Source: Selaginella moellendorffii (lineage: Eukaryota; Plantae; Lycopodiophyta). From it: a DNA stretch of 64,000 bases. The notes beneath the pieces are model-generated. The model saw only the letters and a list, made by a program, of their open reading frames with translations, was not told the origin of the DNA and did no database searches. The stretch is from positions 2,759,668 to 2,823,667 of the forward strand of contig NW_003314270.1 of the NCBI RefSeq assembly GCF_000143415.4, written 5' to 3'. The position numbers and the translations under genes were made by a program. Numbering within the stretch: position 1 is the first letter of the stretch; each line of letters begins with the position of its first letter. Of the stretch, positions 3,470 through 25,600 are shown piece after piece.

Positions 3470-3924
3470 TTTCAATGCTGTTGCAGTAAAATCTCATGAG
3501 GAACTCAATGTCTTGCATTCAACTAACTTAAATTGGATACATATCAGAAAAGTGAAGCAATGATCGACAATTCTAAGCAACCAAAGCTCCTTACCCGCTA
3601 GGAAGCCAAGAAGCGTTTACTCCTACAAGCAAAAGAAGTAAGGTTTTGATTCATGAGAGAGAGAGAGAGAAAGTAATTTGAAGGGCCCTGGCATCAAGTG
3701 GTGTATGTGCATATGTACTATAAGAGCAGTGAGTCTGATTGTTGTTTTCTCAGTGCTGTTACAATAAAATCTCGTGAGGAATTTGCTCCATGCCTTGCTT
3801 TTGACAGCTTGAATTGGATACATACCACAGAAGTGTAGCACAGAGCTAAGCAACTGAAGCTCCTTGCCCCTAGGAAGGAGGGAGCGCTTACTCCTACAAG
3901 CAAAAGATATAAGTTCTTGATTCC

Positions 3925-15741: not shown

Positions 15742-16508
15742 TTAAGTTCTCAACCCGCCATTGTCATTCCTCGGTTTGCATTTTTGGAGCTCCAGCGCAA
15801 CCTGTAACGTGCGAAGAACAGTATTGACAACAGCGATTCTTTTCATGGACGAAGATCCAGATATTTTCTACGTACCGTCATGTAGCCGGGATGGGTGCCA
15901 ATGGCAGCGATCACCTGTCGAGCAGAGCTTATTTGGAGACAATTCCAAAGAAAGAAGACTTTGACGCACCGTTTCAAACTTTTCACCTCGGACGTTTAAG
16001 CGGACGACTTGCATTCCTTTGCGAACGGTGACGCCTTGGTAGACCTCTTGATCCGCGTAGACAACCGCGCTCGTTGCAATCAGCTGGTCGCCGACTTCTA
16101 CCAGGCCACTCTTCTCTGCGTTGCCTCCTGGTGAAACTTCGGCCACGAAAATGTTGCCTGCAGCGTCCTCCTCAAGGATCATGCCTGTTCGAAATGAAAC
16201 ATCAAAATAAGAAATGGAGGAGTGTTTGTTGCTTGTTCTTCTTCCTAGATATACAGACCCAAAGGTTTTCTTAGCTCCACTTTGACTCTGCTGCATCCGG
16301 GTGGAGGAGCATCTTCCGAGGAGCTGCTGCTGATTTGTGGTTGATTCGTTGGAGATGTTCTAAGAATGAATTTCTTGTGCTTGGGCAGAAGAATGGTCTT
16401 TTCACCTGCATAGAATTGGAAAGGATATGTATGCACACTACCTCGATTTCTAGCTAGGAGGATCCTTGTAGCACAGGAGCAGCAAGGCCATGGATTGACC
16501 AAGGCCAT
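15742..16508 (-). CDS. PDZ-domain protein with probable plastid transit peptide, 4 exons
   Basis: MALVNPW...Ser-rich leader, then VELRKPLG|MILEED...VSPGGNAEKSGLVEVGDQLIATS...FET|VIAAIGTHPGYMT|VALELQKC...LRT*. Splice sites are canonical. Confidence 0.8.
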
Positions 16509-16599
16509 GCCTTTTACCACACACCACTGATTTAAATGAAATGGATATTCTTTAAATGGTAGAAAGCCGGTCGATCCCTTAACAACTCAACACTGTGCC

Positions 16600-16790
16600 T
16601 CTTGCGGCCCAGGGAAGAGATGGATGCGTTCGAGCAGCAGCTCCGCTGCGCGAGCCAAAGCCAGAGATTCCACTTCCCTTCGTCCGAGGGAGCTGTGTGG
16701 GAGGCAGATCAAGTTTTGGATTGCATAATAAAAAGGCGCTGCAGGATGAGATCCAGAAGCTCGAAGCCCATGAGCTGCTTCGATGGATCC
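16600..16790 (+). pseudogene. Relic C-terminus of an older paralogue of the 7TM gene (second copy ~20255-20430)
   Basis: RPREEMDAFEQQL...SQRFHFPSSEGAVWEA and QDEIQKLE align to RPKEEMDNFEQEL...SQRIHFPSSEGAIWEA...DEIRKLE of the adjacent gene. Confidence 0.75.
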
Positions 16791-16915
16791 GTGATCTACG
16801 AGACCAGGCAAAGTTCCAGGACCAAGAGGTGATAAAGAATTAATAATCTCGGGTTGAGAAAGTCAAGAACGAGGGCTGGAAGAACAGATAGAGATCGAGC
16901 GAGTTTCCCTCGTCC

Positions 16916-18098
16916 ATGGCGTCTGGATGTTGCAACCAAGGGTGTTACATGAAAGTGGTGCCCAGTGATCCAGACACTCCCTACGACTTCACACTCTTGG
17001 CATTTGCTTTGGCCGCGACAATTCCATTCATCGTGGCGAATGGCGCGCTCTTCGCCCATCGCGGGCGCTCCTACTTTCGAGCGCAGGGAGGTGTGTATCT
17101 CATCCTAGGGAGTTCGCTAGCGGGCTTAGTCTGGATAGCATCCCAGTTCGTCAACAATGACCACTTCAGCAGGATCGGGCCGCTCAGGAGCTGCTTGCTG
17201 TGGACGTTCTGGCTCCAGGGGACGGCTATTTGCCTGTGGTTCGTGCTCACTATTCTCCGGCTTGCTCGGATGTACGAGCTCAGCAAGAACATCGACAACT
17301 GGTCGTGGAAATACTACGTTTTCGTCGCCCTGTGCCTGCTTCCCAACGTCATCCTGTCCACCGTTGCTAGCTTGAGTGACTTCCATGAACACGAGAGAAG
17401 GTACAGTTCATGGCTTGCGATGTTTCACCTCTTTCTCTCTCGGACTGATTGCTCTTGATGCCAGCGTTCGGTTGTGCAAGCTAAGCAAGAACTGGAAAAC
17501 CACCGTCTTCTCCGTGTATACTCCATACTGGCTGGTGCTCATCTTCTTCATCTATAAGCTGCGCAAGCAGGAGGATCCACTGCTATCTACCGAGTACAGG
17601 GACACTGTGGACTACTTGGCTGTGACTATCGTCATTATCATGCTCGCCAGCATGGCGGATGTGACGATAACTAGCGATACTATCCCTGGCAGATGCGCCC
17701 TAACGTTTTCAACATGCTGCCTCGTGTTCTTCAACTTTTGGATACGCTTCGGGTGGCCGATTTATCTGTGTCTCTTCAGGCCCAAAGAGGAGATGGACAA
17801 CTTCGAGCAGGAGCTAACTTACGGTGGTGCCCAAGCTCTGGACATGGTTTGCAGCCAAAGGATACACTTCCCTTCCAGTGAAGGTGCTATTTGGGAAGCT
17901 TTCTCCAAAGCTAGTGACGATCGGGACAGATACAAGGTATAGCTTGCTTCTATCTCTTCTTCTTCTTGCTCTCTAGCTAATGCTACACTGAAACAGGATG
18001 AAATACGGAAGCTGGAATTGCAGAAAGCGTTGCTGGAAGGGAAGATCCTAGAGTTACAAATGCAAAAGAGAAAAGCACTTGGATCTGGTCACTCTTAA
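16916..18098 (+). CDS. Seven-transmembrane protein similar to the 7TM domain of plant RGS1, with coiled-coil tail and no RGS domain (copy A)
   Basis: Exons 16916-17400, 17465-17936, 17997-18098. Seven hydrophobic segments; MASGC start, CLLWTFWLQG, LLP, ECL2 Cys; tail DEIRKLELQKALLEGKILELQ. Confidence 0.75.
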
Positions 18099-18476
18099 AG
18101 TTAATCTCTCAATTGACTTTTTTCTTTCTTTTTGATTCTTTACTTGACTTTCAGTCCAGACTTATCTTCATCATTATATATATAGAGAGATATTTAAATA
18201 TCTATAGAAAATTATAAAGCAAAATAACTACACTTAATTAGAAAACTTGAAATAACTGCTTACACTATCAGGAGATTGAAAGAATACTTATTACCATGAA
18301 GTCGTTAATTTTTCTCTGTACAATAAACATCAAACTCGTGAGTGTTACAAAGAGCCATCCCAAAATCGCGCTCGCGGATCAGGAGAAACGAAAAATGAAG
18401 AAAAAAGAGAAACTAGAAATCCCTTTTGGTGTGGTGTCAGTGGTGTTGGTTTGTTGTCTGTCACAGCCCCGATGGA

Positions 18477-20172
18477 TCAATCCTCCATGTTCCCCTGCAA
18501 TATGGACAGCTCCCCTTCCTTCATAAGTATGTCCTCCTCCAGGAGATGAACTCTTCGCTTGAGCACTTCCACCTCGGCACTCATTCGCAGGGCCTCTCGT
18601 CCCAATTGCTCCGCCTCGCTTTTGATCGAGTCCCTCTCCTTTCTCGTTCTCACCAGCTCCTCCTTGACTTTGCTCCAGTCCTGGACCCGATCGTTCAGTC
18701 CGCGTTGGAGCCAAGTTATCTTCTCCTCCTTCTCGGCAAGCTGTGCAAACATCACCCAAGTTCTACCATCAGAAAAGCAAATAAATGCGAGAGAGAGAGA
18801 GAGATGGAGTACCTTGTGCTCGAGGCTAATCACTCGCTGGGCGGCCTCGTCCACGAGTGCTTGCAGCTTCACAGCGTCCTTCTTCAGCACGAAACGATCC
18901 TCCACGGTCCTTTTCGTTTCAACGTCTTGGTGCTCGAGCTCCACTTCTCGCGCGCACAGCTTCTCCCTCAACAGCACGCAATGCATGTCTTGCACCTTGA
19001 GCCATGAGCTCCTCTTTCAAATCGTTAGGTTGCTCTTTCATCTGGACAAAGCACAATCACAGTTTGATTAGAACAAAGTAGCCACGACAAAGCTTTTACC
19101 TGCTCCAGCTCGGTCTCGCTTTTCTGGCAAAGCTCCGATTCTTGTTTGAGCCTCGTTTGAAGGTCCACAATCTCCTTCTCCTTTGCATTGTACAGCCTGA
19201 ACAGCTCTTCATTTCTACCCGTCAGTCGTTGGATCCGTGTCTCGAGCGTCTTTCTGGCCTCGGACATGTTTTGCTCCAGCCCCTGAATCGTCACATCCTT
19301 TTTCCCGCACTCCGTACGCGCTGCAAAAGCTCTGATTCACGCTCCAGCAACTTGTCTTTCATCAATTCCAGTCGCTCGCTCATTTGGTTGAGCTGCTCGG
19401 CAGACACCTGCACATTGTCGGACTGATATGGTAAGATGCCAAGAGCAAAAAAGATAAAGCGCTCTCACCTCTAAACACTTTTGAACGTCGCACTCCGTGT
19501 CTTCATTCCCGTCCTCGCTTACCCTTTTCCTGAAGGCCGCCTGCTTGGCTACGATTCCCTGTAGGAGCCTGTTCGTCTTCACTACAGCTTGTAACCGTGT
19601 TTCTAGCCATTTGAAATCTTTGTCTTTATCCTGTAGCTGCAGCTTCCGCTTCGCGATCTCGTCCTGTAAGCTTTTGACCTCCTTGTCGACATTTTTCTTA
19701 CGCGATTCCATTTCGCGGATAGAGTCGGTTTTTGTCTTCTCCTCCCTCAATGCTTCTACCAGGCCACTCTTCTCTGCGTTGCCTCCTGGTGAAACTTCGG
19801 CCACGAAAATGTTGCCTGCAGAGTCCTCCTCAAGGATCATGCCTGTTCGAAATGAAACATCAAAATAAGAAATGGAGGAGTGTTTGTTGCTTGTTCTTCT
19901 CCTTAGATATACAGACCCAAAGGTTTTCTTAGCTCCACTTTGACTCTGCTGCATCCGGGTGGAGGAGCATCTTCCGAGGAACTGCTGCTGCTGATGATTT
20001 GTGGTTGATTCGTTGGAGATGTTCTAAGAATGAATTTCTTGTGCTTGGGCAGAAGAACGGTCTTTTCACCTGCATAGAATTGGAAAGGATATATATGCAC
20101 ACTACCTGGATTTCTAGCTAGGAGGATCCTTGTCGCACAGGAGCAGCAAGGCCATGGATTGACCAAGGCCAT
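18477..20172 (-). pseudogene. Chimeric gene at the duplication junction: PDZ gene 5' part fused in frame to coiled-coil gene 3' part; frameshift at ~19325
   Basis: ...GGNAEKSGLVE|ALREEKTKTDS... reads through the junction. A4 at 19325-19328 versus A5 at 23149-23153 gives an early TGA at 19291-19293. Confidence 0.75.
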
Positions 20173-20569
20173 GCCTTTACCACACACCCCTGATTTAAAT
20201 GAAATGGATATTCTTTAAATGGTAGAAAGCCGCGTGGCCCGTCTATCAGCAGTGTGCCCCAAGGGAAGAGATGGATGCGTTCGAGCAGCAGCTGACCAGC
20301 GCCGCTGCGCGAGCCAAAGCCAGAGATTCCGCTTCCCTTCGTCCGAGGGAGCTGTGTGGGAGGCAGATCTAATAAAAAAGCGCTGCAGGATGAGATCCAG
20401 AAGCTCGAAGCCCAGGAGCTGCTTCTCCAGGAGAAGATGGATCCGTGATCTATGAGACCAGGCAAAGTTCCAACACCAAGAGGTGATAAAGAAGTAATAA
20501 TCTCAGGTTGAGAAAGTCAAGAACGGGGGCTGGAAGAACAGATAGAGGTCGAGCGAGTTGCCCTCGTCC

Positions 20570-21749
20570 ATGGCGTCTGGATGTTGCAACCAAGGGTGTT
20601 ACATGAAAGTGGTGCCCAGTGATCCAGACACTCCCTACGACTTCACACTCCTGGCATTTGCTTTGGCCGCGACAATTCCATTCATCGTGGCGAATGGCGC
20701 GCTCTTCGCCCATCGCGGGCGCTCCTACTTTCGAGCGCAGGGAGGTGTGTATCTCATCTTAGGGAGTTCGCTAGCGGGCTTAGTCTGGATAGCATCCCAG
20801 TTCGTCAACAATGACCACTTCAGCAGGATCGGGCCGCTCAGGAGCTGCTTGCTGTGGACGTTCTGGCTCCAGGGGACGGCTATTTGCCTGTGGTTCGTGC
20901 TCACTATTCTCCGGCTTGCTCGGATGTACGAGCTCAGCAAGAACATCGACAACTGGTCGTGGAAATACTACGTTTTCGTCGCCCTGTGCCTGCTTCCCAA
21001 CGTCATCCTGTCCACCGTTGCTAGCTTGAGTGACTTCCATGAACACGAGAGAAGGTACAGTTCATGGCTTCCGATGTTTCATCTCTTTCTCTCTCGGACT
21101 GATTGCTCTTGATGCCAGCGTTCGGTTGTGCAAGCTAAGCAAGAACTGGAAAACCACCGTCTTCTCCGTGTATACTCCATACTGGCTGGTGCTCATCTTC
21201 GTCATCTATCAGCTGCGCAACCAGGAGGATCCACTGCTATCTACCGAGTACAGGGACACTGTGGACTACTTGGCTGTAACTACCGTCATTGTCATGCTCG
21301 GCGGCATGCCGGATTGGACGATCACTAGCGATACTATCCCAGGCAGATGCGCCCTAACGTTTTCGACATGCTGCCTCGTGTTCTTCAACTTTTGGATACG
21401 CTTCGGGTGGCCGATTTATCTGTGTCTCTTCAGGCCCAAAGAGGAGATGGACAACTTCGAGCAGGAGCTAACTTACGGTGGTGCCCAAGCTCTGGACATG
21501 GTTTACAGCCAAAGGATACACTTCCCTTCCAGTGAAGGTGCTATTTGGGAAGCTTTCTCCAAAGCTAGTGACGATCGGGACAGATACAAGGTAGGGCTTG
21601 CTTCTATCTTTTCTTCTTGTTGCTCTCTAGCTAATGCTACACTGAAACAGGATGAAATACGGAAGCTAAAATTGCAGAAAGCGTTGCTGGAAGGGAAGAT
21701 CCTAGAGTTACAAATGCAAAAGAGAAAAGCATTTAGATCTCAGGAATGA
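20570..21749 (+). CDS. RGS1-like 7TM protein without RGS domain (copy B)
   Basis: Same three-exon structure as copy A. Open frame ending ...QKRKAFRSQE*. Confidence 0.75.
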
Positions 21750-21868
21750 CCCGCATCCCATCCTCCACCAGATTCTAAAATATGCCGTTTTAATTGACTT
21801 TTTTCTTTCTTTTTTTATTCTTTACTTGACTTTCAATCTAGATCTATCTTTGTCATTATATATAAAGA

Positions 21869-22027
21869 TGTGAAGTCAAAATATACAATTACAAAGCATA
21901 GTGGGATTTTAGTAATTATTGAATTGGTTTCAATATGGAACATTCACTCTTATATATAAATTAAGGTTTATAGGTTAATTGGTATGTATATTTTCTATAT
22001 TCCCTTTGCATATTTCAAACACTTACA
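21869..22027 (+). mobile_element. Degenerate solo LTR related to the LTR at 60432-60607
   Basis: TGTGA...TTACA ends. Shares agtgggatttt.gta, attggtttcaat and attttctatattcccttt with 60432-60607. Absent from duplication copy A. Confidence 0.75.
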
Positions 22028-22293
22028 GAGTATTTATAAAAAATTATAAAGCAAATTAACTACACTTAATTAGAAAACTTTAAATAACTGCTTTGAAAGA
22101 ATACTTATTACCATGAAGTCGTTAATTTTTCTCTGTACAATAAACATCAAACTCGTGAGTGTTACAAAGAGCCATCCCAAAATCGCGCTCGCGGATCAGG
22201 AGAAACGAAAAATGAAGAAAAAAAAGAAACTAGAAATCCCTTTTGGTGTGGTGTCAGTGGTGTTGGTTTGTTGTCTGTCACAGCCCCGATGGA

Positions 22294-22600
22294 TCAATCC
22301 TCCATGTTCCCCTGCAATATGGACAGCTCCCCTTCCTTCATAAGTATGTCCTCCTCCAGGAGATGAACTCTTCGCTTGAGCACTTCCACCTCGGCACTCA
22401 TTCGCAGGGCCTCTCGTCCCAATTGCTCCGCCTCGCTTTTGATCGAGTCCCTCTCCTTTCTCGTTCTCACCAGCTCCTCCTTGACTTTGCTCCAGTCCTG
22501 GACCCGATCGTTCAGTCCGCGTTGGAGCCAAGTTATCTTCTCCTCCTTCTCGGCAAGCTGTGCAAACATCACCCAAGTTCTACCATCAGAAAAGCAAATA

Positions 22601-22640
<40 letters not shown>

Positions 22641-25600
22641 TACCTTGTGCTCGAGGCTAATCACTCGCTGGGCGGCCTCGTCCACGAGTGCTTGCAGCTT
22701 CACAGCGTCCTTCTTCAGCACGAAACGATCCTCCACGGTCCTTTTCGTTTCAACGTCGTGGTGCTCGAGCTCCACTTCTCGCGCGCACAGCTTCTCCCTC
22801 AACAGCACGCAATGCATGTCTTGCACCTTTAGCTCCTCTTTGAGATCGTTAGATTGCTCTTTCATCTGGGCAAAGCACAATCACAGTTTGATTAGAACAA
22901 AGTAACCACGACAAAGCTTTTACCTGTTCCAGCTCGGTCTCGCTTTTCTGGCGAAGCTCCGATTCTTGTTTGAGCCTCGTTTGAAGGTCCACAATCTCCT
23001 TCTCCTTTGCATTGTACAGCCTGAACAGCTCTTCATTTCTACCCGTCAGTCGTTGGATCCGTGTCTCGAGCGTCTTTCTGGCCTCGGACATGTTTTGCTC
23101 CAGCCCCTGAATCGTCACATCCTTTTTCCCGCACTCCGTACGCGCTGCAAAAAGCTCTGATTCACGCTCCAGCAACTTGTCTTTCATCAATTCCAGTCGC
23201 TCGCTCATTTGGTTGAGCTGCTCGGCAGACACCTGCACATTGTCGGACTGATAAGGTAAGAGCAAAAAAGATAAAGCGCCCTCACCTCTAAACACTTTTG
23301 AACGTCGCACTCTGTGTCTTCATTCCCGTCCTCGCTTACCCTTTTCCTGAAGGCCGCCTGCTTGGCTACGATTCCCTGTAGGAGCCTGTTCGTCTTCACT
23401 ACAGCTTGTAACCGTGTTTCTAGCCATTTGAAATCTTTGTCTTTATCCTGTAGCTGCAGCTTCCGCTTCGCGATCTCGTCCTGTAAGCTTTTGACCTCCT
23501 CGTCGACATTTTTCTTACGCGATTCCATCTCGCGGATAGAGTCGGTTTTTGTCTTCTCCTCCCTCAATGCGGTGCTGAGCTTGATCGTGAGGATCGAGTT
23601 GTGTTCTTGCAGCTCATAAATCTGTGTTTTCAGCCTGTCTACCTCCGAGTGATATTCAAAGCCAGGCTTTACAGTGCCGTTGCTGCCATCCCTCTCTTCG
23701 ACCTTTGCTTTGTCCACGAGTTTCTTCAGCTCCCGCCTCACGGCTGTTGCTTCGCGGTTTGAAGCATCTAATTCGCGACGTAGGCCCTGTTCTATTGTAC
23801 TCAGTCTCACGAGCTCGTTTTGCAGCCTCACGACGGCTTTGTCTTTTTCCTGTGGCCTCGAATCTGTAACGTTATTGAGCCCATTGTAGAGACCTTGGAT
23901 GCTTTTTTCGTGGTCTGTACACAGCTGCTGTAGCCTGGCCACCAGACGACGTAGATCCGTATTCTCATCCTCCTTTTCTTGACAAGACTTTCTCAAGGAC
24001 GCAAGTTCATCTTCTGTATGCATGCTCTGCTTACGGGTGTTGACAGAGGATTCCCGTATCTCCAAAATAACTTTCTCTGCCTCGTCTAGCTTCTTCTTGT
24101 GTGTCGCAATCTGATCTTCATACTGCCTTATCTGTTCCCGCAGGCCTTTCTCCCTAGCAGCCATTGACGCTGTCTCCTTTTGCAAGCTTACATTATTCTC
24201 CGCAATGTCCCGGACTCTTCCCTTAAGCCTTGTCTCCTCCATCTGTGCCTTCTCCAGTCTCGCTATCCAATCTGCCTCCCTTCGCTGTAATTCCTCTTCC
24301 AATGAAGTCTGCTGGTCAGATTTTTCTCTTTCCGAGGTAACCGCGGCTAACTCAAGTCTTCTCTTCATGAGTGCCAATCCATCCTTGATGGTTACTTGCT
24401 CAAGAAGACGTTGCTTGGCTTCTGAAGCAGCCTCCAGCGCCAGCCTGAGCTTTTGCTCCAGCAACTCCCGCGCCCTGCTCTGCACGTCGGGAGTTTCCTG
24501 GACGCCATCAAAATCCGAGTCGTCACTTAAGTAGGAATCTGCCAGCTCTGCTTTCACGGCCTGGACTTGCTTCTCCGCTTCACTTGCACGTTCTTGAGCT
24601 ACGTAGTGCATGTTGTCAACTTGGTCCTCGTACTCCTTTAGTTTGTTATCTAAGTTCATTAGCTCACTGTCAGTTTTAAGGGCCTCCCGCCTGCCTAGTG
24701 GAAACATTTCCCTGGATCTGGAGTTCCTGAAGCTACCGTAGCTGAGGTATCGATTGTCGGAAAAATCCAGAATGATCTCGTTGGGATCAACCTCTGCTGC
24801 ACTCGATTCATTGAGATAACTTTTGAGAGCGCGGGTGGAATTGGAGTCCTTGTAAGGGCTGCTGTTAGCCACCCCACTGCTGCCTTCAGAAAAGCTAGCC
24901 GGCGCTCTCAAGTCCTTCTTCGAGCCACCGGTCCCCCGAATAGCCTTGGCCAGCTTCTCAGCGACAAGCCTGGCGCCTTTAGCCTTCCCAGGCGCCTTGT
25001 CATTGTCCCTACGAAACTTGTATGGAACAATGGCTTCGTCATACTCGACGATTGCTCGCCTCTCCCCGAACGAATTCGAGCCCGAAGTAGCTACTGACAA
25101 ATTCTCTGCCGAGTCTGTCCTACCATGACCTCGCGTTCTGCCAGGACTTAAGTGTGACACGAAGCTGGACAGCATTGCAAACGGTCCCTCTGCGGAAGGA
25201 TTTCCATCCTCAAACCTGTGCTGACTCGACTTTGCTTTGGAGTCTCCAGAAAATGGCATCCGCAGCCTGGGAGCGCTCTTAGTCCGTTTGGCATGCTGCC
25301 TTTCCTTGCCAAGTCCAGGGGGCCTGAAAATTCAAGCGAACAGTTCAGAGAACACGAAGAAGAATTTGTCTGTAAACCAAAACAAAGAAACTCACGGTTG
25401 TAGTACTGTGTCCATGCTGGGCCTGTATCTTGACTCGGCTGTGCTCCTTGTTTCATCCGTCAAGGCACGCATCCTATGGGCCGACTGGAAGTAAGCCGTG
25501 GGAGAGCAAGCCCGCACGCTGAGAACTTGCTTCTCCTCGCAATCGTCCTCGCAATACGGGCCACTGCGAGAAGCCGGCGACGCCAGGTCCATCTCTATAC

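Follow-up and report, generated by a model that had tools for sequence, protein, structure and literature searches.

In this study, we analysed a stretch of 64,000 nt from contig NW_003314270.1 of the spikemoss Selaginella moellendorffii (the window; all coordinates are window positions), in which two neighbouring plus-strand genes encode proteins with seven transmembrane (7TM) helices. The original prediction had placed tandem genes with products of about 350 amino acids at 16916-21749, and two intact three-exon genes, designated copy 1 and copy 2, were found at those coordinates, with products of 352 and 351 amino acids. Compared exon by exon, the product of copy 1 was identical to P0006 (SELMODRAFT_440217, XP_002967766, 352 aa) and that of copy 2 to P0007 (SELMODRAFT_409045, XP_002967767, 351 aa); both public proteins carry the label hypothetical. 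The introns are 64 and 60 nt long, and all four have GT..AG ends. The codon split between exon 1 and exon 2 is AGC, which encodes Ser162, and the C-terminal tail has an exon of its own in phase 0. As shown in Table 1, the genes lie in two tandem units of 95-96% identity. In a blastn self-comparison of the window, 16095-18086 aligned with 19753-21740 (94.8%) and 18199-19753 with 22031-23570 (96.0%), and no third unit was detected. The spacing of the repeat families agreed with this two-unit layout. Each unit contains, in order, part of a minus-strand PDZ gene, a plus-strand 7TM relic, the intact plus-strand 7TM gene, and a minus-strand coiled-coil gene represented by its 3' part. The PDZ portion in unit 2 is a mere copy that is cut at the duplication junction.

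Table 1. Features of the tandem 7TM locus, in window positions (ECL2, extracellular loop 2; UTR, untranslated region).
Feature	Position	Strand	Description
Tandem duplication unit 1	16095..19752		3,658 bp; 5' part of minus-strand PDZ gene, relic, 7TM gene copy 1, 3' part of minus-strand coiled-coil gene
Tandem duplication unit 2	19753..23570		3,818 bp
Copy 1 exon 1	16916..17400	+	Met1 to base 2 of the Ser162 codon; covers N-terminus, TM1-TM4, and beginning of ECL2; translation equals P0006 residues 1-161
Copy 1 exon 2	17465..17936	+	ECL2 Cys166, TM5-TM7, helix 8, FPSSEGAIWEAF motif, to Lys319; translation equals P0006 residues 163-319
Copy 1 exon 3	17997..18098	+	33-aa leucine-zipper-like tail DEIRKLELQKALLEGKILELQMQKRKALGSGHS and stop codon
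Copy 2 exon 1	20570..21054	+	Translation equals P0007 residues 1-161
Copy 2 exon 2	21119..21590	+	Translation equals P0007 residues 163-319
Copy 2 exon 3	21651..21749	+	32-aa tail and stop codon; 3' UTR follows without further splice
Relic 1	16593..16840	+	Pseudogenised 3' end of P0010-type paralog (TM7 end, helix 8, FPSSEG motif, tail in different frame); tblastn with P0010: 73% over 16593-16706, 60% over 16742-16840
Relic 2	20208..20530	+	3' fragment of the same P0010 type, interrupted by stop codons and frameshifts (tblastn); at least partly transcribed as upstream leader of copy 2

Transcript contigs from four runs of four studies (X1, X3, X6, and X9) were compared with 16500-22100. The runs were taken as RNA because their contigs lacked introns, and some contigs fit both copies because the copies are nearly identical. 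Intron 1 of copy 1 was removed in contigs of X1 and X9 at the joint 17398>17463 (cut +2), which corresponds to 17400/17465, and intron 1 of copy 2 was removed in a contig of X6 at the joint 21052>21117 (cut +2), at the predicted GT..AG sites. At the junction between exon 2 and the tail exon, contigs of X1, X3, and X6 had loose ends at 17937/17995 and 21591/21649, reading …GACAGATACA / AG-G / ATGAAATACGGAAGCT. A contig at 21670-21903 followed the genomic sequence without a splice across the stop codon and the 3' UTR. Two contigs, 21248-21395 and 21388-21576, matched copy 2 with zero mismatches, and that at 17557-17763 matched copy 1 with one mismatch. The last exon had been predicted as the tail, a model open to refutation by a splice to an exon for a regulator of G-protein signalling (RGS) domain. 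The contigs confirmed both introns and the tail exon, and none of them linked either gene to an RGS exon. The two genes are intact and have spliced transcripts.

Intron 2 of copy 2 (21591-21650) is 60 nt long and has no in-frame stop, and its retention would add 20 residues (VGLASIFSSCCSLANATLKQ) ahead of the tail. This is why the list of open reading frames (ORFs) has one 239-aa ORF at that place. The equivalent intron 2 of copy 1 contains a stop codon. No contig that retained intron 2 of copy 2 was listed among the transcript contigs.

The architecture of the products was then derived from the copy 1 protein. A hydropathy scan gave seven peaks, and an AlphaFold2 model of the monomer (33-row alignment, mean predicted local distance difference test score (pLDDT) 82, predicted template modelling score (pTM) 0.74) placed TM helices at residues 22-47, 60-80, 93-123, 132-153, 170-194, 200-228, and 235-266, in line with the seven hydrophobic helices of the original prediction. 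Helix 8 follows at 269-281, and a long helix at 300-349 has a pLDDT of 83-88 over residues 311-340. The N-terminus consists of 21 residues with four cysteines and thus leaves no ectodomain. The cysteines that had been noticed at the top of TM3 and in ECL2 are C93 and C166, and neither varies in the 33 sequences of alignment A3 or the 25 sequences of A5. W99 and R238 are also invariant, and D24, W96, and R115 nearly invariant, across 25-33 relatives. In the 25-sequence 7TM alignment, W108 and P143 are invariant and H83, G104, and G237 nearly so. The basic segment HRGRSYFRAQ, proposed beforehand as intracellular loop 1 (ICL1), was located at residues 48-57. A topology with the N-terminus outside and the C-terminus inside would fit both this basic ICL1 and an extracellular position of C93 and C166.

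Relatives were collected by a HMMER (phmmer) search of 1.84 billion representatives at E <= 0.001, which returned 46 proteins; a match needs about 35 bits at that size, so a weak true relation would be missed. A word-index search returned Selaginella paralogs only. The land-plant matches came from Diphasiastrum complanatum (two genes), Psilotum nudum, Adiantum nelumboides, Riccia sorocarpa, Marchantia polymorpha (Mp1g05640 / MARPO_0005s0043), M. paleacea, and a second Selaginella subfamily (LOC9657419, LOC9653485). Tailed relatives were found in lycophytes, ferns, and liverworts, with 37-43% identity across these groups, and every full-length land-plant member that was read had no RGS box and ended in a heptad tail. 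Selaginella itself has at least eight entries of subfamily A and at least two of subfamily B, many of them nearly identical. No seed-plant member was among the identified relatives. A maximum-likelihood tree of the 7TM region (31 rows, LG+C20) resolved subfamily A with Selaginella, Diphasiastrum, Psilotum, and Riccia (support 100/100) and subfamily B with Selaginella, Diphasiastrum, and Marchantia (support 100/99). The two subfamilies formed one clade (support 91/92), with a fungal group separate and the RGS-bearing protists outside and unplaced.

A reading of the pair as decaying duplicates or annotation artefacts without function has to be weighed against these data. Truncated relics lie beside both genes, and public models at other loci are in some cases fused or fragmentary (P0009, P0062, P0005, P0003). 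Between copy 1 and copy 2, dS was 0.031 and dN/dS about 0.5, with 20 changes (7 synonymous and 13 non-synonymous) mostly in TM5-TM6, and such a ratio would also suit decay. However, both frames are intact with canonical splice sites, spliced contigs occurred in several studies and in some cases had no mismatch to copy 2, and the 37-43% identity from lycophytes to ferns and liverworts is accompanied by invariant residues throughout. We consider loss of function hardly credible and already close to refuted.

The tail exon encodes DEIRKLELQKALLEGKILELQMQKRKA, which can be arranged in about four heptads with Y318, L325, L332, and L339 at d positions and I322, K329, and I336 at a positions. L325 and L332, seven residues apart, are invariant in 13 land-plant sequences from the two subfamilies. 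Profiles of the tail, and a phmmer search of P0006 against PDB sequences, gave weak matches to leucine zippers and coiled coils. When the subfamilies were compared by hhalign, subfamily A aligned with subfamily B at a probability of 99.9 (E 5.9e-34) over 316 columns, tail included. The heptad tail noticed in the original prediction is thus conserved in both land-plant subfamilies. Lycophytes and liverworts occur in both subfamilies, whose tails are homologous, and the RGS-less form with its zipper tail is therefore at least as old as the common ancestor of liverworts and vascular plants. The RGS-less form had been expected to predate the latest duplication; it does, and by the tree and the tail alignment it is far older, predating the split of liverworts and vascular plants. 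A derivation of the tail as a degenerate RGS remnant was considered and rejected: the hhalign alignment to 7TM-RGS proteins ends at helix 8, and the tail profile found no RGS domain in PDB.

We next compared the predicted fold with solved structures. VIA-align of the model against 48,161 chains gave top matches that were all class C G-protein-coupled receptors (GPCRs), with Drosophila GABA-B first (Z 21.2 over 255 residues, root-mean-square deviation 3.3), followed by GPR156 (Z 20.8 and 20.7), mGlu2 (19.7), human GABA-B1 (19.1), and GPR158 (19.1). Further class C matches were mGlu1/5, CaSR, TAS1R, and GPRC5D, and the class C range was Z 21.2 to 17.4, as against at most 16.0 for class A, 15.3 for adhesion receptors, and 14.1 for Frizzled. 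In a Foldseek search of PDB, the top 47 matches were all class C receptors. Identity to the solved class C chains was 9-14%. An ESM feature search gave GPR156 and 7tm_3 as the nearest clusters (score 0.90, 199/256 features); once the 7tm_3 clusters were excluded, the scores did not exceed 0.77 and lay below any useful level, with an RGS cluster of 0.76 among them. The automatic UniProt label 'GPCR family 2 profile 2' was rejected as the wrong class, as the adhesion/secretin class reached Z of about 15 compared with 19-21 for class C.

The relation to class C was also seen at the level of profiles. The Selaginella subfamily (A1) aligned with proteins that pass the Pfam 7tm_3 cutoff (A8) at a probability of 98.9 and E 2e-17 over 257 columns, and the mixed family profile A3, which includes fungal members, reached GABA-B2 (E 2.2e-6) and mGlu4 (E 6.5e-6) in PDB. 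Pfam 7tm_3 (PF00003; cutoff 33.5 bits) matched 14 of the 46 HMMER relatives, among them the subfamily-B-type P0022 (53.6 bits), P0050 (45.7), P0044 (40.8), and Adiantum P0014 (33.9); the Selaginella subfamily B protein P0027 scored 28.6 bits, below the cutoff. These results agree with the GPCR likeness claimed in the original prediction. In the model the predicted fold is that of class C, with homology to the Pfam 7tm_3 members, and class C / 7TM-RGS-type is the best-supported label for the membrane domain.

The proteins could instead be some other seven-helix membrane protein, such as a transporter or scaffold, with the GPCR likeness being a common arrangement of the bundle. Pfam had no match in the window's proteins, and a scan of the four exon translations gave only sub-cutoff noise (NADHdh, MatE, DUFs). 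A shape search of the ESM Atlas returned unrelated bacterial membrane proteins and was uninformative, and helical bundles reach middling Z by chance. The chance level is about 13-14, however, whereas class C chains reached Z 19-21 over 240-255 residues, 3-5 units above classes A, B, and F. The hhalign E of 2e-17 to proteins above the 7tm_3 cutoff and the invariant, GPCR-typical cysteine pair of TM3 and ECL2 also speak against a chance likeness, and we regard it as very improbable.

Several known class C systems resemble the spikemoss proteins in part. GABA-B and GPR156 (PF00003) share with them the seven-helix fold and the TM3-ECL2 cysteine pair, and GPR156 and GPRC5D likewise have no Venus-flytrap ectodomain. 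GABA-B1 and GABA-B2 pair via a C-terminal coiled coil. This coiled coil is cytoplasmic and follows TM7 as in the Selaginella proteins, in which the tail is much shorter, with about 4 heptads in 352 aa. GPR158 and GPR179, with RGS7-G-beta-5, provide a case in which a class C-type 7TM protein is functionally tied to an RGS protein, and thus the 7TM module and RGS are able to work in trans as well as in cis. GPR158, with Z 19.1 to the Selaginella model, has a large ectodomain, which the Selaginella proteins lack, and a long RGS7-recruiting tail. The Selaginella proteins also differ from known class C receptors in the host group, as Krishnan et al. (2012, PMC3251606) report the Glutamate (class C) family to be missing from land plants.

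The RGS box (PF00615) was not matched by Pfam in the exons of either gene or in P0006, and no RGS chain in PDB was matched by the land-plant profiles. Together with the transcripts, this upholds the claim that the proteins lack an RGS box. Among the HMMER matches, three proteins did bear RGS: Ancoracysta twista P0026 (E 4.2e-12), Muranothrix gubernata P0030 (E 2.9e-9), and an RGS+LRR (leucine-rich repeat) protein, P0038. In the protist relatives the Pfam RGS box lies after helix 8 (E 1e-14 to 1e-17). The land-plant family (A4) aligned with protist 7TM-RGS (A6) by hhalign at a probability of 100 and E 2.4e-47 over 261 columns, ending right after helix 8. The 7TM region and helix 8 are homologous over their full length (phmmer E 4e-12 to 4e-6), and the two groups share the invariant or nearly invariant residues D24, C93, W96, W99, R115, P143, C166, and G237-R238. 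After helix 8, the protist proteins continue into the RGS box, whereas the land-plant family continues into the leucine zipper. De Mendoza et al. (2014, PMC3971589) recorded architectures of the 7TM-RGS type in numerous bikonts and in early fungi. The 'GPCR family 3' proteins of Zoopagomycota (Dimargaris, Martensiomyces, Dipsacomyces) are also relatives (phmmer E 6e-7 to 6e-5, hhalign E 2e-17), 7TM-only and similar in size, but they form a separate, well-supported clade with no conserved leucine-zipper tail, and most lie above the Pfam 7tm_3 cutoff. Another separate 7TM clade comprises P0028, P0033, P0040, P0043, P0045, P0047, and P0049, whose C-terminal regions align with the protist RGS box in A3 (FLDYC, FINWC, FLVWC). 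Pfam found no RGS in these seven proteins at E 0.01; judged from the alignment, their C-termini may be divergent RGS-like domains.

A strict form of the original prediction would make the genes paralogs of plant 7TM-RGS1 that lost the RGS box and acquired the coiled-coil exon in its place. The sole relatives with other domains are indeed 7TM-RGS proteins (P0026, P0030, and P0038), the profile alignment spans the 7TM region and helix 8 and stops at the start of the RGS linker, and the separate phase-0 exon of the tail would be compatible with a swap at the level of exons. In addition, a single canonical 7TM-RGS gene has been reported for Selaginella (Urano 2012, PMC3386157). The same study reports none for Marchantia, and liverworts in general are reported to be without RGS1 (PMC3386157, PMC3718340) although the spikemoss-type family is present in them. 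Plant 7TM-RGS1 (AtRGS1 and its Selaginella ortholog) follows the same general plan of a short N-terminus, seven helices, helix 8, and a cytoplasmic module, whereas the spikemoss family has no RGS box, linker, or C-tail phosphosites. AtRGS1 starts MASGC...GC.PSDY, a beginning that the family seems to share, and its C.LW..W...G, LLP, ECL2 Cys, and SR/GR before TM7 would correspond to the family's invariant positions. On the other side, no streptophyte RGS-bearing protein was among the 46 matches at E <= 0.001 in the 1.84 billion representatives, a search in which a relation of less than about 35 bits could be missed. When the family alignment A3 was used in a word-index search, all matches were Selaginella paralogs or Kickxellomycotina proteins and none was a plant RGS1; a search with the RGS region of P0030 gave no protein other than P0030. 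Subfamilies A and B formed their own clade (91/92) with the RGS protists outside and unplaced, which fits either direction, RGS having been lost or never present, and the tail profile matched coiled coils only in PDB and no RGS domain. Descent from plant RGS1 by loss of its box is therefore possible, though we hold it to be the weaker explanation, and the label 'RGS1-like' is plausible. The interpretation in the original prediction was accordingly supported in part: the GPCR likeness, the lack of an RGS box, the conserved tail, and the nearness of 7TM-RGS proteins among relatives with other domains all stood, while the RGS-bearing relatives that were found are protists.

Taken together, the locus likely carries two functional genes that arose by a recent duplication and belong to an undescribed family in seed-free land plants; they would encode receptor-like, 7TM-only proteins with a class C-type transmembrane domain. 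No paper on the family was found in the literature by locus tags or by concept, nor one on AtRGS1 with 7tm_3 or on MASGC with RGS1. A number of points weigh against this reading. Pfam 7tm_3 matched neither the exons of the two genes (E <= 10) nor P0006 (E <= 0.01). The land-plant-only profiles A4 and A7 and the 7TM-only profile A5 reached no class C chain in PDB (E <= 1 or 0.1), and thus the link to class C in sequence is transitive. The evidence for the fold comes from a predicted model built on a 33-row alignment. The dN/dS of about 0.5 between the copies rests on 20 differences and says little on selection, and the index offers no more than a guess that the runs are RNA. Localisation to a membrane, dimerisation, binding of a ligand, and any link to G proteins are putative.

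In the proposed mechanism, the 7TM module, which is fused to RGS in some protists, is followed in the land-plant family by the conserved helix 8 and then by a leucine zipper on the cytoplasmic side, which spans about four heptads and has its own exon. The 21-residue N-terminus leaves no space for a Venus-flytrap domain, and any ligand would therefore bind inside the helix bundle. The tail would zip two protomers, either identical copies or different paralogs, in the manner of the coiled coil of GABA-B1/B2. The proteins would be uncoupled from GTPase-activating protein (GAP) activity and would dimerise through the tail, as the original prediction proposed. Rather than accelerating GTP hydrolysis in cis, they would pass a conformational signal to G-alpha/XLG or another partner bound at helix 8 or the tail.

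The same features have been considered under another role, in which the proteins would not signal themselves but would pair with other 7TM proteins, such as Selaginella RGS1 or paralogs, as decoy or regulatory subunits for trafficking or activity. In the GABA-B receptor, one subunit controls the surface expression of the other via the coiled coil. An extracellular part of only 21 residues, a conserved pairing tail, and the many nearly identical Selaginella paralogs (at least 8 entries in subfamily A and 2 in subfamily B) would be consistent with such partners. However, Marchantia keeps Mp1g05640 even though it is reported to be free of RGS (PMC3386157), and thus a role that depends on RGS1 cannot be general. 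We consider the partner role improbable.

At the other end, the proteins might form a true class C-type GPCR family of seed-free land plants, dimeric and zipped by the tail, with a small ligand in the bundle, and acting on G-alpha/XLG as activator or GAP-independent regulator. This full form of the receptor reading is unlikely. If true, it would contradict both the view that plants have no Glutamate/class C receptors and the view that plant G proteins have no receptor-type 7TM partners except RGS1, and Marchantia, which is reported to be without RGS1 and has a subfamily-B gene, would be a clean system in which to learn what the 7TM module of 7TM-RGS senses.

In the current view, G-protein signalling in plants does not depend on classical receptors, and RGS1 is its single well-studied 7TM regulator. 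For the probable reading as a 7TM-only family, the results mean that the membrane domain of 7TM-RGS type is class C-like, and that plants have this 7TM domain alone, joined to a pairing helix instead of a GTPase-accelerating box and kept since the ancestor of liverworts and vascular plants. With such a family, the 7TM module could be studied independently of GAP activity in tractable species, for example Marchantia, and the absence of seed plants among the identified relatives raises the question why.

The relics record the history of the locus. The original prediction described a relic at 16600-16790 that preserves the same tail. A relic with a tail was confirmed there, with the bounds given in Table 1, but it derives from a P0010-type paralog and not from the type of the adjacent gene. 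Both relics matched P0010 better than the adjacent gene type P0006 (73% vs 60%) and keep the longer P0010 tail, QDEIQKLEA..DLRDQAKFQD. Because the relics are P0010-like, the locus earlier held a pair, [P0010-type][P0006-type], and the first of the two decayed prior to the duplication of the 3.7-kb unit. The two genes of the window stem from a recent tandem duplication, and the relics record the older two-gene arrangement. The relic tail region ahead of copy 2 is transcribed, as contigs 20336-20658 (X1) and 20380-20658 (X3) continue unspliced into exon 1; the relic ahead of copy 1 was covered in one run (X3, 16500-16873). At other loci, the models P0009 (LOC9636668, 640 aa) and P0062 (SELMODRAFT_406059, 982 aa) join an intact 7TM gene to a degenerated P0010-type copy that lies upstream of it, and P0062 apparently includes more. 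These fusions are probably the same relic-plus-gene arrangement merged by annotation.

The neighbouring genes lie on the minus strand. The flanking PDZ-domain gene occupies 15868-16296 and matched Pfam PDZ at E 1e-5. The long coiled-coil gene, at 18301-19753 and 22031-23570, weakly matched a filament-like plant protein, and its spliced contigs define introns at 18741-18812, 19042-19099, and 19405-19465. At the duplication junction at 19753, a chimeric minus-strand ORF of 205 aa (19337-19954) begins with residues 1-67 of the PDZ gene, which breaks off within its PDZ domain at ...SGLVE, and continues in frame into the downstream exons of the coiled-coil gene. No transcript of this chimera was seen; all contigs that reach 19753 diverge there and continue like the parental copies at 16094 or 23571. 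A GA/CT microsatellite coding for ERERER in the coiled-coil gene is longer in unit 2 (about 22590-22640) than in unit 1 (about 18780-18800), and this length difference explains some of the change in repeat spacing, from 3817 to 3831, between unit 1 and unit 2.

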